A DNA stretch of 64,000 nt from Vicugna vicugna (lineage: Eukaryota), in the NCBI GenBank assembly GCA_013265495.1, contig MU062295.1, positions 930,001-994,000 of the forward strand, in the 5' to 3' direction. The notes beneath the pieces were generated by a model. The model did no database searches and was not told the DNA's origin. It worked only from the letters and a program-made list of their open reading frames with translations. Below, in pieces: positions 21,486-42,941 of the stretch. Position 1 is the stretch's first letter. Every line of letters begins with the position of its first letter. The position numbers and the translations under genes are program-made.

Positions 21486-21569
21486 CTCATCTTGCACATC
21501 AAGTTCTTCTTCAATCAGCTCTGCTTCCATTAACTCGAGAGGATCTTTACAGTCCTGGATGAGGGTGAT
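21486..21569 (-). CDS. SLC26A4: Pendrin exon 20 (84 nt): [28 protein letters not shown]
   Basis: Acidic C-terminal tail; ctgtcaag acceptor, GAG|gtacga donor. Confidence 0.96.
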
Positions 21570-22196
21570 CTTGACAGAACACAGAGTATTTATTGGAAGT
21601 AAAATAGCATCAACTCACTTGGTACTAAGAATGATTTGCTGGTGCCTCTCGTCTGTAATCTGTACTTCAAAGTCCTTTTCAGCTCTCTTGTCCTTTTCTA
21701 TTTCCCACTTAGAATTTTCCCCTTATCATTTCTTCATTTCAGGTGTGAACTGGTATAGCTCTCCATTGTTTAACCTCCCTTGCAGCTCTCTTCCCCAACC
21801 TCTGAAGTGCATGCCTCTTAATGAGTCACCCCGTCTGCCTAACCGAGTCAGCAGTCAGTGGTGTTTTTCTTTCAATGGCTAAGCTAAAGCACTCAGTACA
21901 GCACTGAGGATGCAGTGAAGGCCCGGTGAAGGGTTCGTGACTGATGACAATAAACAGTCTCAGGTTGAATTGGGTGGGGCTTAATTTTATTGGAGATGGA
22001 AACCAACATGTATGGACCAAGTAGGTTGTTTGGGAAAGTTCTGCTGTTTAACAGTAGTTTGTAAAGCCAGCAGCAACCTGGACTTTGTCCTATGTACAAA
22101 GAATATCCCCGGAGCAACTCTAAATGTGTATCAAGGCAAGAGTGACATTTCAAAATGCTTCCTAGCTACTTTTCATCTCACAAATAAGTAAGCAGT

Positions 22197-28425: not shown

Positions 28426-28508
28426 AACTGAATCACTATGCTGTATACCAGAAATTAACACAACATTGTAAATAGACTATACTTCAATTTAAAAAAATAA
28501 AATAAAAT
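28305..28508 (+). mobile_element. 5'-truncated L1 3' end with internal (TA)n(TG)n(TA)n microsatellite, intron 16
   Basis: 13-bp TSD aaaatttcttaaa at 28292-28304 and 28509-28521; L1 tail gactatacttcaattt-(AAATA)n. Confidence 0.88.
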
Positions 28509-29016
28509 AAAATTTCTTAAAAATCCTACAGACTGTTCCTTGGTAAGCAAAACGTCGAGGGGATGAACTCTTCAAGAATGAGGTTTACCTCAGCCCAAAT
28601 TTCAATGTGCTCCAGGAAGAAAAATGGATGAGTGGTGGAGCCAGAACATGCATGATTTCTGGAAGACTGTGGACCTTAGCCAAGAGATACACTGGCAGGA
28701 GAGTTTGAATAACAGATAATAGAGCTAAAGTTAATGAACTTACGAGTGCTTTCTGTTGTAGTTTTCTGGCATTGAATTAGCACTTGTTTTGCTCCTTTCG
28801 GTAAAATTAAGGTTTATTTCACGTTAGGAAAGAAAAAAATCACACCCTGTGTTTCCAAAGAGCACTGCTGGTTTCGTTTTATTCCCTCTTGCCTATAACT
28901 CAGCTGTCCTCTGACATACATATGTCATCTGCTTGTACGCATCTGAGTACCAAAGCGGGTATATTTCATTTTAGACACTAACTGCCTTAGTCTCATCTGA
29001 GAAAGTAAAGGATTTA

Positions 29017-29163
<147 letters not shown>

Positions 29164-29914
29164 TTAAAAGTTCTGGTGCCTAATGCTCATTCGTGGCAAC
29201 TGTTATCTGGAAAGCCTATTTCTCAAGTGACATTATTCTTCAATATATCCTACCAAAAAAGAAATTCTGAGGTCTGATGGAGGTCTCCACTATCAGGCCA
29301 CCCTACCCACACAGAGACTCAGCGAAGGCAGTAGCAAATTAAAGACTCCAAGACAATTGAAAAAAAAAAAAACCCAGCAAAAAATAAACTCTTGAGCTTT
29401 AAGTCTATGTTTTCCAAACTTCATTGACATCATAGAGCCCTTTTGTTATTGCAACATCTGTGAACATTCCTCTGAACCTTAGGAAAACAGTGATCTAGAG
29501 GCAAACCCCAACTTCAAAGTATAGCATGGATTTGCACCAGGATTTCCTGCTTATGTATTCCACTTAGAGTTTTTACCCTTTATTCCAGCTGGGCACACCC
29601 CCCCCCACCCAAACCCCCACTTCTGCCCATGTTCCCAGACTTTCCTCTCAGCCCACATAGTTCCCAGACACCTGACATCTTTCCTTCTGCCCAGCTGCCA
29701 CCCAAAGCCTGATCAACTAACGTGGACTGCTCCCTTCCAAGAAATCTTAACACTTAACTGTCTACACTACTTAATCTTACTTTTGGAACTTAATCAAATT
29801 CTGCCTGGAGACATCTCTTAGTGGTTTTGTGTGGCAGAGTTATTGCTACCTGGATTTTAACATATGTGTTGTTGTTGTTTTTTTCCTATCCTCAAACAGA
29901 TTGAAAGTTATTTG

Positions 29915-30064
29915 GGGGGAAGGCATAGCTCAAGTGGTAGGGTGCATGCTTGGCATGCACAAGGTCCTGGGTTCAATCCCCAGTACCTCCTCTGAAAAAT
30001 AAATACATACATAAGTAAACCTAATTACCTCCCTGCAAAAATAAACAAATAAAACTTTAAAAAA
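29915..30064 (+). mobile_element. Camelid tRNA-Ala-derived SINE, long-tail form (intron 15)
   Basis: A/B boxes, aaacctaattacctccc tail; 11-bp TSD aaagttatttg at 29904-29914 and 30065-30075. Confidence 0.93.
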
Positions 30065-30153
30065 AAAGTTATTTGAGGGCAAGGATATTTTAATTCTTAA
30101 TGTCTTGTACGAAGGGAATAGGGTATAGGGCCTGTAGGACGAATGAAGTCTCA

Positions 30154-30288
<135 letters not shown>

Positions 30289-32010
30289 CTAGCATTAAAA
30301 AAAAGAAAAGAAAGAAAGAAATTGTGTGAGTTTAAATTATTTCACGCCTCAAATATGCAATTAAGTTTTTGGCTATTCAGTGAGGAGCTGAGTTGCAGTT
30401 GCTCAGGGGAGCCAGGCGGCTGCACTCAACTGTCTTTGAAGAGGGGCTTCATTGCATCTGAGAAGCACTGGGGTTATACACACAGTCCCACAGAAGGTCA
30501 AGTTAGAAGACCTTAAAAAACAATTATTCAACCCTGTGATTTCCAGATAAAGACACTGAGGCTCAGAATGGTGATATGATTTGCCTTAAGGTCATATCAC
30601 TGGCTCTCTCTTCCCCACCCCCAAGCCAAATTCTTTTATAAAGGGGGGGGGGGCAAAATCAAGGGGACTTGCAGGAACTGAGGCCTATGATGTCATTTGC
30701 TTGTTCTTACCCTGATGCACAGTGGCCAGACCACAGGTGGACCCCACAGAATCACAGGCTTTTCTGCTTTTAGGGATCATAGTGATTTTAGTCTAGCCCC
30801 TCCAGATGAGAAAACTGAGGTCCTGAGAGGCTGCGTGACTCAGCTACTCGGCAAGGTCTCCACAAGCCAGAGCCTCAAACTCTGAACCCGAGACTCACCT
30901 AGGGTTCCCTGCCACAGAGCAAAAAGATTCGTTTCTAGAGTCATTTCTAGCTCTTGATGGTACCTGGTTCAACATAACTGAGAAAGATTATAGAAATAAA
31001 TGAAGCAGCAGCTACTGCAATTCCAGTCAGTAGCCAACATTTTTTTAATGTTAAGGTAATATTCGACTACAACTTCCTAGGATTCACATTAAAAAAAAAT
31101 TTTTTTTTGCTTTTAAAAACTATTTGTTGCTAAATTAATATTTTCTTACTTTTCTTTCTTCCTCCCTCCCTCCCTTCATTTCTTTCTAACTTTCCTTCAT
31201 GGCAGGTCCACTTTCTCCATGAGCAATTTCTCCAGTGATCACCACAGTAAATCTGGTTACCGTCTGTCACTAGAGCCTCTTTACCCATTCCTTGCTCTTC
31301 CGTGTTTTAGAAGTGTTGAGAAGAATAGGTATTCACTTTTCTTTGAATCTTTGTTAGAATTTGCCAGTAAAACAGTCTAGCCCTGGGCTTTTGTTTGTTG
31401 GGATTTTTTTTTATTACTGACTTAATCTCCTCACTAGTGATTAGTCTGTCCAGATTTTCTTTTTCTTCATGATTCAGTCTTGCAAGATTGTATGTTTCTA
31501 GGCATTTATCCTTTTTTTCTCAGTTCTACAATTTGTTGCTGTATAGTTGTTAATAGTAGTCTTTTAACGATCCTCTGAATGTCTGTGGTATTATTTGTTA
31601 AGTTTGCCTCTTTTGTTTCTGATTTTATTTATTTGAGCCCTCTCTATTTTCCTGTTTTTTTCTCAGGTGAGCCGAGCTAAAAGTTTGTCAATTTTGTCTA
31701 TCTTTTCAAAGAACCAGCTCTTTGGTTTTTTATCTTTCCTTTTCTTTTTTCTTTCTTTATTTTTTTAAGTCTGTTTCATTTGTTTCCACTCTGATCTTGA
31801 TTATTGCCTTCTTTCTACTAACCTTGGGCTCCATTTGCTCTTTCTCTAGTTCCTTTGGATGTAAATTAGACTGTTTATTTGAGATGTTTCATGTTTCTTC
31901 TGTTAGGCCTGTATTGCTGTGAACTTCCCTCTTAGAACTGCTTTTGCTGCATCTCATCAATTTCAGAATGTTGTATTTCCATTTTCACTGGTCTCGAGGT
32001 ATTTTTTTTT

Positions 32011-32133
32011 TGGGAGGTGGGAGGTAATTAGGTTTATTTATTTATTTTTTTAGATGGTGGTGCTGGGGATTGAACCCAGGACCTCATGCATGCTAGGCAT
32101 ACACTCTAACACTGAGCTATACCCTCCCTCCTT
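32011..32133 (-). mobile_element. Camelid tRNA-Ala SINE nested in L1
   Basis: TSD gaggtattttttttt on both sides (from 31996 and 32134); tail motif present. Confidence 0.9.
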
Positions 32134-33570
32134 GAGGTATTTTTTTTTTAATTCCCCTTTGGTTTCTTCATTGACCCATTGTTTGTTCGGTAACATGTGG
32201 CTTAGTCTTCATATATTTGTGATTTTGTTTTTGTTTTTAGCTTTCTTCTTATAATTGATTTCTAGTTTTTAATACCATTGTGGAAAAGATGTTTAATACC
32301 ATTTCAACCTTCTTACATGTGTTGAGACTTTGTTCTGTTCCTTTCTCTTTCTCTTGCTCTCTTCCCTGTGGTTTGATGACTTTCTTTAATGTTATATTTA
32401 GAGTCTTGTCTCATTATCTTTTGTGTACCTACTGTAGGTTTTTGCTTTGTAGTTACCATGAGGTTCACATATAGCAGCCTGTAAATCTATAAATAAAATA
32501 GCCTATTTTAAGCTGACAGCAACTTAAGTTTGAATGTACTCTAGAATGTCTACATTTTTGCTCCTCCCCCACCTTTTGTTTTAGATGTCATATTTTACAT
32601 CCTTTTGTTTTGCATATTCCTTAGCTATTTATTGTAGTTGTAATTAATTTTACTACCTTTGTCTTTTAACCTTCATGTTAGCTGTGTAAGCAGTTAACCT
32701 ACTACCTTTACTATATATTTGCCTTTACCAGTGAGATTTTTACTTTCATACATTTTCTTGTTGCTAGTTAGTGCCTTTTCCTTTCAGTTTAAAGAAATCC
32801 CTTTCACATTTTTGTGAAGCTAGTTTAGTGGAGATGAACTCCGTTAGCTTTTGCCCGGCTGGAAAACTCTTCATCTTCCCTTTGAGTCTGAATAATAACC
32901 TTGCCGGGTGGAGAATTCTTGGTTGGAAGTTTTGTCCTTTCACGATATACTCTGCGTACATCATGCCACTCCCTTCTGGCCTGCAAAGTTGCTGCTGAAA
33001 AATCAGCTGACTCTCCCACCTTGGGGGTTCCCATGTATGTAACAAGTTATTTTTCTCTTGCTATTTTTAAGATTCAGTCTTTAACTTTTGATATTTTAAT
33101 TATAATGTCTTGGTATAGATCTCTTTGGGTTCATCGTATTTGGAACTCACTGTACTTCCTGGACCTGGATGTTTGTTTCCTTCCCCAGGTTAGGGAAGTT
33201 TTCAGCCATTATTTCTTCAAAAGGTTCTCTGCCCCTCTCTCTCTCTCTCCTCCTTCTTGTTCCCCTACAATATGAATGTTATTCTGCTTGATGCTGTCTC
33301 ATAGGTCCCGTAAGCTGTCCTCACCTTCTTTTTGCTGCTCTGCTTGGGTCAGTCCCACTGCCCTGTCTTCTAGGTTGCTGGTCCATTTTTCTGCTTCATC
33401 CAGTTTGCTGCTGAACTCGTCTAGTGTATTCTTCCGTTCAGTAATTGTATTCTTCAGCTCTGTGACTTCTGTTTAGACTTTCTTATATTTTCTGTCTCTG
33501 TTGAAGTTCTCATGTGTTCATCCATTCTTCTCCTGAGTTCAGTGAGCATCTTTATAACCATTACTTTGAA

Positions 33571-40080: not shown

Positions 40081-40182
<102 letters not shown>

Positions 40183-40824
40183 TCAACAGGGTTCATCCCG
40201 TCCCCTCTGGATGTCTGTCTGCTGGATATGTGCGTGAGAAAGCCCGCTGAGGGGTGCACTTGGCGCTTCCTGACCTCCCCCCTTCTGCTCAATACTGTTG
40301 AGAGAAATGAGAATTAGTTGCTAAAACTCTACAAAACTGAGGGAAAATGGAACCCATATATTTAGTAGCTGTGGCAGAGAAATTAAATGTGGAGATAGCC
40401 TATTTGACCTGGATTGCCCTTGGATATATTACAGACCTATACTTTTGGTGTCAGTTCAGGAGGGCAAACTTCTAGTCACTTGCCATACCAGGAAACAGGG
40501 ACCACCCCCCTTTCTCGACAACAGATCCTCGTAAAGTGCTTGGGAAATACATTCTCAGCACGAAACTGATTCTTCTGCATTATTGAATCAGCAGCCTGAT
40601 AACAATTCTGCTAATGCTTTTGAGCACATGGCTGCCATGAAAATCTCATAGAAAATATGCTTACCAGTCCCACTGCAAATTCACAAAACCACAGGAGCCT
40701 GCTGAGAGGTGAGACCACACATCCTCTCCCAGCTGCACAGACGCAGGCTCAGAGCTGTGCCCCGTGGCAGCCCCAGTGAAGGCGGGTCAATTAGCAGGAG
40801 AAAAGGAAGCTTCAGAAACTTTAC

Positions 40825-40857
40825 CTTCGCTGGCAAAAAAGCTCTCCTAAGATCCAT
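40825..40857 (-). CDS. SLC26A4: Candidate alternative first coding exon in intron 10: MDLRRAFLPAK, phase 0 into exon 11
   Basis: tttATGG...GCGAAG|gtaaag; 33 nt; in-frame TAA 9 nt upstream of the ATG; unique sequence. No transcript evidence available. Confidence 0.4.
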
Positions 40858-42860
40858 AAATAGTTAGGAGAGAGGCTGAGGGGGTGGGGACTATTCTCTG
40901 GTGTGATTAGATGACCAGTGGATTCTCTGCTGAGACAGCTGGGACCTGGCCGAGGTGAAGGCTAGAAGCTCTGAAACAAAGGAGAGGAGACAGGGAGCCA
41001 GAGGCAAAGCGATCAGAGGGGAAGCAGCAGAGAAGGTTGCATTGGGCACAAGTACTGCCACGTGCAAGATGCTTGAGTCAAAGGAGACGCAAAAAGCCAA
41101 TATACATAGAAAATCCGAAAACTTAAGGCAATTTCATAGTCACACTCATTCTCTCCACCTGGCAAATTGATCATGCACGTTCAGAGGACAGCTAGACCAG
41201 CCTGAGGCAGTATTATGTACATGATGTACTGAAAAGTCTGCTCTGTCCAGACAGATCTCCTTCCTAGGCAGTTTATTACCTCCCAGAACCATACCTCTGG
41301 GTTCCCAGTTCCTTGTGAGCTTTCCCCTCTCCTATCTAAGAGAAGCTAGCATCCTCTCTCCCGCCTTCCCTCCTTCCTTCCATGCAGTTTCTTAACCATA
41401 TCTATTGTCTGTCCTGAGCCATATGTATCTCACTGTGGATGTAGGGCTCTATGGACTGGTGAGAGAGATGGAGAGCTGGGGACAGGAACCATAGCCAGCT
41501 GCCCAATTCACGCCAGGAGGGTGGCCACCGACTCACCAAGCATAGGGAATAATTAGCCTGCAGTTGGGGGACCAAGATTAATTTTCATTACTATATTAAA
41601 GTCTGTGAGTGACCCATTACCTGTACTTAATTTGTAAGGAGAAATTACTTATTTTGTGGGGAATGCTGTAGATTTTATATCTCTGAGCAGACTCGATTAC
41701 TAGAAAATTAATTCTGTTGAGTGAGAAGGTAATCAGCTAGAGAGCAGTTTGTCATCAGAATTACTTTTTCATGAATCAGTAGCAGTCAGGTTGGACTGAA
41801 AGAGCAGGTTGCAGCGATGAGCTCTTCTACCATCTGCAGATGTGCTGAAAACACTTGATGCCCACCAACACTCATGCTTCTATTCGTTCACTCAGCAAAT
41901 ACATGCTGGATGTTTCACGTGTCAGGTACAACGTATGTGTCTCAGGTACTAAGACACTGTTCCTACCTGGAGAAACTAATGACTGGAATGATCAACATTT
42001 ACAAGTATGGGCAGGGATTTTACAAACATTTTCTTACTCAATCCTCACAACATCCCTATGAGATGGATTCAGTGATTATCCCCATTGCATAGATGCTGAA
42101 ACTGAGGCTCCAACATTAAAAGGGAGCATGAGAAGCCACACAAGGGAAGACCTGCCAGTTTATTTGATCATGAGTCCCTGGATTTCAGTCCAGGCATTTA
42201 GACTTTTAACCCCAGAATTTAGTATACGTTTCAGTAATTAAATATCAAGCTATTTCTGTGCTTGTTTCATTCTTCAATACTGAAATCCTGGCATCCTTCA
42301 TTCCTAAATATAATACACGCCAGTGTGTGGCAGGGGCTATTAGCTTACCAGAACACCATTATCCCCAAACCCTCTGCCAAGGAATCACTTTACATGGGCA
42401 TTCTCTCTGGGGGGCGGTGGGCAGGGTCGTATGGAGGGGGGTGTGCCTCCTCTGAGCCTGCAGGTAACAGCAGGAGTGTGGAGATCACCATGTGGGGGTC
42501 TGCCTGCATCCTCTTACAGCCGTGTGTTCTGGGGAGCTCATCAGTGCCCCATTTCCAGTGGAAGCAGCAGAAACTCTCGCTGCTGACAGCTGCCCCCGAA
42601 TATGGGCAACTCTGGAAATCACCCCCGACCTCTTCCCCTTGACCCCAGATCTGCGCTCACGCTTCCTGTTGGGGCTGTGTTGTTTTACGTGCTCCCTCAG
42701 AACCAGAAATGTTTGCAGGAAAAAAAAAAAGAATACTCCATTTTTAAAATAAAAATTCTGAAAATGAAAATTAAATTTTTGTTCAGCAGGAGCCATGAAA
42801 TGGGAAGAAGTTGATTCTTCCAACCCCGTCACAAAGACCTATTATAAATGGGAAAGTAGA

Positions 42861-42941
42861 GGGGTGGAAATAGCTCAGGGGTAGAGCGCATGCTTAGCAC
42901 GCACAAGGTCCTGGGTCCAATCCCCAGTGCCTCCATCAAAA
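42861..42941 (+). mobile_element. Camelid tRNA-Ala SINE, short-tail form (intron 10)
   Basis: tagctcaggggtagagcgcatgcttagcacgcacaaggtcctgggtccaatccccagtgcctcca; tail almost absent. Confidence 0.88.

Follow-up and report, generated by a model that had tools for sequence, protein, structure and literature searches.

SLC26A4, the gene encoding pendrin, is a major deafness and Pendred syndrome gene. Cells that express pendrin are FOXI1-positive, and the canonical SLC26A4 promoter, as reportedly described by Yang et al. in 2007, carries paired FOXI1 sites.

Koh et al. (Hum Genet 2026, PMC13375699) recently reported a second point of entry into the gene: in mouse and human, they found a new transcription start site and an unannotated 5′ UTR first exon between exons 10 and 11. 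The new exon was seen with both short and long reads, and the long reads show that it is a first exon. Translation from Met432 gives a 349-amino acid, 39-kDa pendrin in cochlea and kidney, and the short transcript was confirmed by RT-PCR in human thyroid and kidney. The authors noted a "small phyloP peak" (placental) directly upstream of the new start site and an exon body that is unconserved in mouse. Their short pendrin consists of TM12–14 and the STAS domain, lacks HCO3−/Cl− antiport activity, and forms homodimers; it also pairs with the long form, in heterodimers that seem less stable. The antiport activity of the long form was not detectably altered by it, with the authors' caveat that the short form was poorly expressed in their cells. 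Variants in exons 11–21 were argued to affect both isoforms, with worse hearing thresholds (PMC13375699). A full-text literature search returned no other paper that describes the isoform.

We analyzed a candidate for this feature in a camelid genome, which had been proposed from the DNA letters alone. The internal promoter and first exon are already known, and the camelid feature is the counterpart of the published one, not a discovery; a reading of sequence only had nonetheless arrived at a real, recently published internal promoter.

The camelid SLC26A4 locus and the published first exon

The window, a 64,000-nucleotide stretch of camelid DNA (camel in the comparisons below), carries SLC26A4 on its minus strand from exon 3 to the last exon, and its exon translations match Camelus ferus pendrin (P0265, 780 aa). 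Exons 11–21 are present and match Camelus pendrin, the frame downstream of intron 10 appears intact, and exon 11 is 84–96% identical to that of seven other species. Within intron 10, the region 40660–40900 is single-copy in the window and is not a repeat within it; an Rfam scan of the intron returned a tRNA-like SINE as its sole match. The features considered here are collected in Table 1.

Table 1. Features of SLC26A4 intron 10 and its flanking exons, in window coordinates; identity is the mean to camel across seven other placentals
Feature	Position	Strand	Details
SLC26A4 exon 10	44151-44038	minus	mean identity 0.92
SLC26A4 intron 10		minus	3876 nt; mean identity 0.63 overall
Acceptor-like signal	40971..41016	minus	CTGAT 41016-41012, 40-nt pyrimidine tract, CAG/AG with AG 40972-40971
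Conserved block	40802..41001	minus	200 nt; mean identity 0.80, z 2.5
CACCC/GC box CCCCACCCC	40889-40881	minus	read from sequence
TATTTAT (ATAAATA on the plus strand), "forkhead" site	40862-40856	minus	read from sequence
ATG and 11 codons, MDLRRAFLPAK	ATG 40857-40855; ORF 40857..40825	minus	read from sequence
Donor-like AAG/GTAAAG	40827..40819	minus	last exon base 40825; read from sequence
Predicted first exon	40665..40831	minus	just 3′ of block; contains primer match
Exon body (predicted)	40801-40665	minus	mean identity 0.54 (unconserved)
uORF, 13 codons, MCGLTSQQAPVVL*	40681..40722	minus	scan of predicted 5′ region
Donor CTG/GTAAGC	40667..40659	minus	last exon base 40665; read from sequence
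SLC26A4 exon 11	40161-40084	minus	phase 0; first residue is 422 of P0265; mean identity 0.90
Met432 ATG, short-isoform start codon	40131-40129	minus	inside exon 11; G at −3

Neither the article by Koh et al. nor its supplements, which consist of coding constructs and R code, give exon coordinates, and we located the published exon through its primers. The human 5′ UTR forward primer of the short isoform, listed in their Methods, has a single match in the window, on the minus strand at 40816–40796, with three mismatches and its first 16 bases exact; none was expected by chance (100 shuffles). The match falls 3′ of the first donor (40825), within the longer exon closed by the donor after 40665; exon 11 begins 655 nt further 3′. 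For comparison we fetched the whole SLC26A4 loci of sheep, lynx, white rhinoceros, kangaroo rat, hare, armadillo, mouse, and aardvark. The mouse primer falls in mouse intron 10 (L007:23793–23812), 598 nt 5′ of exon 11; it begins a few bases 3′ of the conserved AAG/GTAAAG and aligns to the same columns as the camel match, and when searched directly against the window at up to three mismatches it was unmatched owing to indels. Because both published primers lie 3′ of the donor at 40825, the published exon reads through that donor. By these alignments, the minus-strand interval 41001–40665 is orthologous to the published intron 10 promoter and first exon. As a side observation, the mouse 5′ UTR is said to lack an ATG (PMC13375699) and ATGs occur in the mouse sequence immediately 3′ of the primer, so the published description of the exon is loose.

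To place this interval in its evolutionary context, exon 10, intron 10, and exon 11 were aligned for camel, sheep, lynx, rhino, kangaroo rat, hare, armadillo, and mouse, with aardvark compared separately. This cross-mammal comparison, which the original prediction had put forward as its own check, identified a 200-nt conserved block well above the intron background (Table 1). No other 200-nt window of intron 10 reaches 0.75, except in an element at 42401–42152 (0.79–0.91). The block stops at about the position where the published primer starts, and the sequence 3′ of it is unconserved; Koh et al. reported this same succession of conserved peak and unconserved exon body. The aardvark retains the block (84% over 233 nt), and because it is present there we place its origin before the split between Afrotheria and Boreoeutheria. 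In armadillo, the block has no detectable match, though the element 42401–42152 and both exons are kept; its absence may be a natural loss. The element itself, 1.3 kb upstream in the same intron, is more strongly conserved than the block and carries an invariant CTG/GTAAGC of its own.

We read the block at 41001–40802 as the putative proximal promoter of the short-isoform transcript. Conservation alone fits a promoter and an enhancer alike, and the block could instead be a conserved intronic element that enhances or silences the main promoter; in camelids it would then lack a start site, and the ATG and donors would be incidental. Such a role would accommodate a second, stronger conserved element in the intron, downstream donors that are not conserved in position, and the armadillo, whose lack of the block indicates that it is dispensable in at least one lineage. 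However, promoter activity at the orthologous place has direct evidence in mouse and RT-PCR evidence in human (PMC13375699), and camel retains the primer region together with the CACCC box and a strong donor. We regard an enhancer or silencer role in place of a promoter as distinctly unlikely.

Motif conservation and the upstream ATG

The original prediction was built on a handful of motifs, namely an ATG opening 11 codons with an in-frame TAA 9 nt upstream, two donors, a CACCC box, and an ATAAATA site, all of which we found in place (Table 1). From these it proposed that intron 10 harbors an internal promoter with an alternative first exon, leading to a short pendrin, a proposal that now has the support of both Koh et al. 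(PMC13375699) and the camel orthology. Two versions were offered. In the preferred one, the ATG at 40857 begins a coding first exon that is spliced from 40825 to exon 11 and adds MDLRRAFLPAK, giving a 370-aa pendrin; the count is correct (11 + 359, with exon 11 opening at residue 422 of the 780-aa P0265). In the second, the donor after 40665 is used, the same ATG begins a uORF of 58 codons whose stop lies within the exon, and Met432 starts a protein of 349 aa. These figures hold as well, and it is this second option that fits the published isoform.

The motif set alone proves nothing, because each motif is common and an ATG–donor pair is easily had by chance. The forkhead core RYAAAYA occurs seven times and CCACCC four times in intron 10, and an ATG with a phase-0 donor at least as strong as that at 40824 was present in 59% of simulated introns (500 first-order Markov simulations). 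Donors and acceptors were scored with approximate matrices, not with MaxEntScan, the acceptor score being a crude one. Of the 197 GT sites of intron 10, the donor matrix places the one at 40824 sixth and the one at 40664 in a tie for the top; the donor after 40665 is the sole site scoring at least 3.0 between the first donor (40825) and exon 11.

The region as a whole goes beyond chance: it is single-copy, carries the unique primer match, and adjoins the 200-nt conserved block. A chance grouping of an ATG, two GT sites, and two short motifs in neutral intron sequence would explain the motifs, every one of which is common, but not the unique match to a published exon primer or conservation well above the intron background in eight species, one of them an afrotherian. 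We give this explanation virtually no credence.

Individual motifs were followed through the eight species that retain the block (camel, sheep, lynx, rhino, kangaroo rat, hare, mouse, and aardvark). The original prediction had suggested looking for a conserved ATG and frame, and these did not emerge: the ATG of 40857 is present in five of the eight (camel, lynx, rhino, kangaroo rat, and mouse), reads GTG in sheep and CCG in hare, is deleted in aardvark, and is in frame in two of the eight. In camel and rhino alone, 33 nt separate the ATG from the first donor; the spacing is 35 nt in lynx and mouse and 31 nt in kangaroo rat, and in these last three species the ATG is out of frame or runs into a stop. 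Rhino carries an identical 11-codon ORF. Since the frame is lost outside camel and rhino, the 11-codon extension is not a conserved coding exon.

In favor of a coding first exon are the ORF and donor themselves, which match the phase 0 of exon 11 and are preceded closely by a stop, the identical rhino ORF, and the AAG/GTAA at its end, which is invariant in all eight species with the block. Against it stand the loss of the ATG in sheep, hare, and aardvark and of the frame in lynx, mouse, and kangaroo rat, the frequency of equal or stronger ATG–donor pairs in simulated introns, the position of both published primers 3′ of its donor, and the published start codon, which is Met432 (PMC13375699). 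We consider the 370-aa form highly improbable.

The case for FOXI1 in the original prediction is likewise not supported by the comparison. TATTTAT is found in three of the eight species (camel, lynx, and rhino), its place being taken by TCTCTAT in mouse, TATCTAT in kangaroo rat, TAGTTGT in sheep, TACTTCC in hare, and an 8-nt deletion in aardvark. Being absent from mouse, where the promoter is active, and limited to three of eight species, the ATAAATA cannot be a site on which FOXI1 control depends; in the three species that carry it, a TATA-like box, ~30 nt upstream of the inferred start, is an equally possible reading. No conserved forkhead core was found in the proximal region, a TGTTT at ~40976 being lost in mouse and kangaroo rat. 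As far as the eight sequences go, the upstream ATG and forkhead-like site of the short form are lineage accidents. The CACCC box is exact in six of the eight (camel, sheep, lynx, rhino, mouse, and aardvark) and degraded in kangaroo rat and hare, and is a putative binding site for an Sp/KLF-type factor.

Donor turnover is common in untranslated first exons. The donor GT after 40665 persists in camel, sheep, lynx, kangaroo rat, and aardvark and is lost in rhino, hare, and mouse; in mouse, a strong CAG/GTATGT lies 192 nt 3′ of the first donor, compared with 160 nt for the camel donor.

Exon-like borders of the conserved block

The conserved block has features at its two ends that resemble splice sites. 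At its 5′ end lies an acceptor-like signal (Table 1), with a CTGAT that resembles a branch site, that is the best in intron 10 by our crude score, with 90% pyrimidine and no AG for 45 nt. Its YAG/AG is present in all eight species, none of which has an AG in the preceding 45 nt, and CTGAY is found in six of them. At the other end, the block stops ~20 nt past the invariant AAG/GTAAAG, which lies 146 nt 3′ of the acceptor-like signal. Reading on from exon 10 into the interval, the third codon is a stop, TAG, in six of the eight species. A conserved acceptor-like and donor-like pair here flanks a stop-containing interval, as would be expected of a conserved cassette or poison exon.

These borders suggest that the block could be, instead of or in addition to a promoter, an internal 146-nt exon (40970–40825), either a stop-containing cassette that the long transcript would take up between exons 10 and 11 or a second 5′ UTR exon spliced from an upstream start. 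Such an exon could be ancient, and might serve as a cassette that tunes full-length pendrin down or as a 5′ UTR exon fed from upstream (possibly from 42401–42152); alternatively, the invariant donor-like motif at the start site might recruit U1 in support of the internal promoter. We assign these possibilities a low probability. The published data point elsewhere, in that the long reads give a first exon and the conserved peak lies upstream of the start, outside the exon (PMC13375699), and the primers fall outside the 146-nt interval. None of 14 predicted isoforms has an insert between exons 10 and 11, which is weak evidence, a non-coding cassette being invisible in protein models; CT-rich tracts and a CACCC box are, besides, ordinary components of promoters. 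We rank an internal or poison exon as a minor and rather unlikely reading because the published data argue for a first exon that starts at about the donor-like motif. The exon-like borders of the block are nonetheless unexplained by a plain promoter reading.

The predicted camel transcript and its relation to known isoforms

Returning to the promoter and first exon, we think it probable that the minus-strand interval 41001–40665 is the camel ortholog of the intron 10 promoter and untranslated first exon that lead to the 349-aa pendrin. The conserved block, with its CACCC box, would act as proximal promoter, and transcription would begin near 40831–40816, a position estimated from the primer positions and the block edge. 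The unconserved exon body (~40831–40665) would then run to a donor, in camel most likely the CTG/GTAAGC after 40665, from which the exon would be spliced to the exon 11 acceptor at 40161. We infer the start-site position, the donor used, and promoter activity in camelids from this comparison. If transcription starts near 40831 and the 40665 donor is used, the predicted 5′ UTR contains a single 13-codon uORF (Table 1), and Met432, where translation would begin, is the next AUG.

The predicted product of 349 aa would comprise the final three transmembrane helices plus the entire STAS domain, and would not transport anions but could dimerize. Residues 432–780 of P0265 correspond to positions 327–380 of the Sulfate_transp model (its last 54) and the complete STAS domain, in agreement with the TM12–14 and STAS of the paper. 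In addition to the isoform itself, the original prediction envisaged a transport-dead subunit that could co-assemble with and modulate full-length pendrin. The published data bear out the loss of transport and also the co-assembly, in the form of apparently less stable heterodimers; they do not bear out the modulation, an effect on the long form being undetectable (PMC13375699).

The matches obtained among public assembled contigs were uninformative on the 5′ UTR. An exact look-up of the camel 349-aa product found nothing among them, and that of the mouse product found a contig (L010) with bare coding sequence and 2 nt of 5′ sequence. A search with camel residues 432–780 returned no mammalian entry of 349 or 370 aa, a result that leaves room for short forms hidden in clusters led by full-length proteins. 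Other transcripts encountered were an exon 8→11 skipping form with an ORF restarting at Met432 (Logan contig L008/P0284), an exon 11-skipping form (P0285), and a mouse contig that begins within exon 10 (P0283). A tamarin gene model (P0288) has 49 residues between exons 10 and 11, partly mapping to 40771–40721, which shows only that gene predictors are also drawn to this region.

The closest described system is the short pendrin of Koh et al. (PMC13375699), with which the camel feature shares its gene, intron, and strand; the published primers fall on or next to the camel sequence. Common to both are the conserved peak followed by an unconserved untranslated exon and, as predicted for camel, the Met432 start and a 349-aa TM12–14/STAS product. 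They differ in that the camel candidate donor (after 40665) is off the mouse position, the likely mouse donor being ~45 nt further 3′, in the TATTTAT of camel, lynx, and rhino, which rodents lack, and in the upstream ATG, whose frame agrees with that of the first donor-like site in camel and rhino but in no other of the species. To the published description our comparison makes small additions, namely the age of the block (aardvark to camel), its absence from armadillo, and the reading of the ATG and forkhead-like site as accidents of lineage.

The canonical SLC26A4 promoter drives the same gene, but, in contrast to its paired FOXI1 sites, the intron 10 block has no conserved forkhead core. 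Internal promoters of other deafness genes also yield N-terminally truncated isoforms, and Koh et al. liken short pendrin to those of MYO15A and otoferlin (PMC13375699). No function has been shown for short pendrin and, unlike these N-truncated isoforms, it loses the catalytic core entirely; what it has in common with them is a shorter product of the same locus and cell-type-specific use.

A second conserved element in intron 10

Intron 10 of SLC26A4 contains, besides the block that we read as the proximal promoter of short pendrin, a second conserved element of approximately 250 nt (table), whose identity across eight placental mammals (0.79–0.91) equals the level of conservation found in coding exons. 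Armadillo and aardvark retain it at 86–88% identity. Within this element lies an invariant donor-like site, which is the joint strongest in the intron; forkhead, GATA, and CACCC cores are absent from the element, as is any Rfam match. We consider the element to be probably an intronic enhancer.

Features located in the window
Feature	Position	Strand	Description
Conserved element	42152-42401	-	Intron 10, ~250 nt; identity 0.79–0.91 across 8 placentals
Invariant donor-like site	42351-42343	-	CTG|GTAAGC, inside the conserved element
tRNA-like match	42864-42935	+	Rfam RF00005, 32.5 bits
Penultimate coding exon	21486-21614	-	Ends ...DVQDE|gt

Lineage differences in intron 10

The armadillo locus (L006; intron 10 at 28455-32694) retains exon 10, exon 11, and the element near 42.4 kb, and no match to the promoter block (41030-40780) was detectable in it. 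This could reflect loss in the lineage or an insertion that replaced the block. Sheep intron 10 (locus L001, 30041-37175) spans 7.1 kb, compared with 3.3–4.6 kb in the other species aligned, and carries an insertion of ~3.3 kb between segments aligning to camel positions 41567 and 41558. The tRNA-like match falls where the intron is least conserved and is most likely a lineage-specific, tRNA-derived SINE.

Gene models and splice variants of pendrin

In a gene model from Saguinus oedipus (hypothetical protein P0288), 49 extra residues separate exon 10 from exon 11. A portion of this insert aligns to window positions 40771-40721 in a different frame, so the model treats the untranslated first exon as a coding cassette. 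At the camel C-terminus, we rejected VRSLFSF... as an altered ending of pendrin, the open frame there being intron read-through past the penultimate coding exon.

Predicted or assembled forms P0282 (Mesoplodon X3), P0279 (Diceros), and P0285 (Logan) skip exon 11 in frame (GGKTQ|SVLAAV), which removes Met432 together with residues of TM11-12. A spliced pendrin transcript (L008, a 1394-nt Logan contig from SRR23641914) joins exon 8 to exon 11; omission of exons 9-10 shifts the frame, and the open reading frame begins again at Met432. The same short product is reached here by a second route, through splicing.
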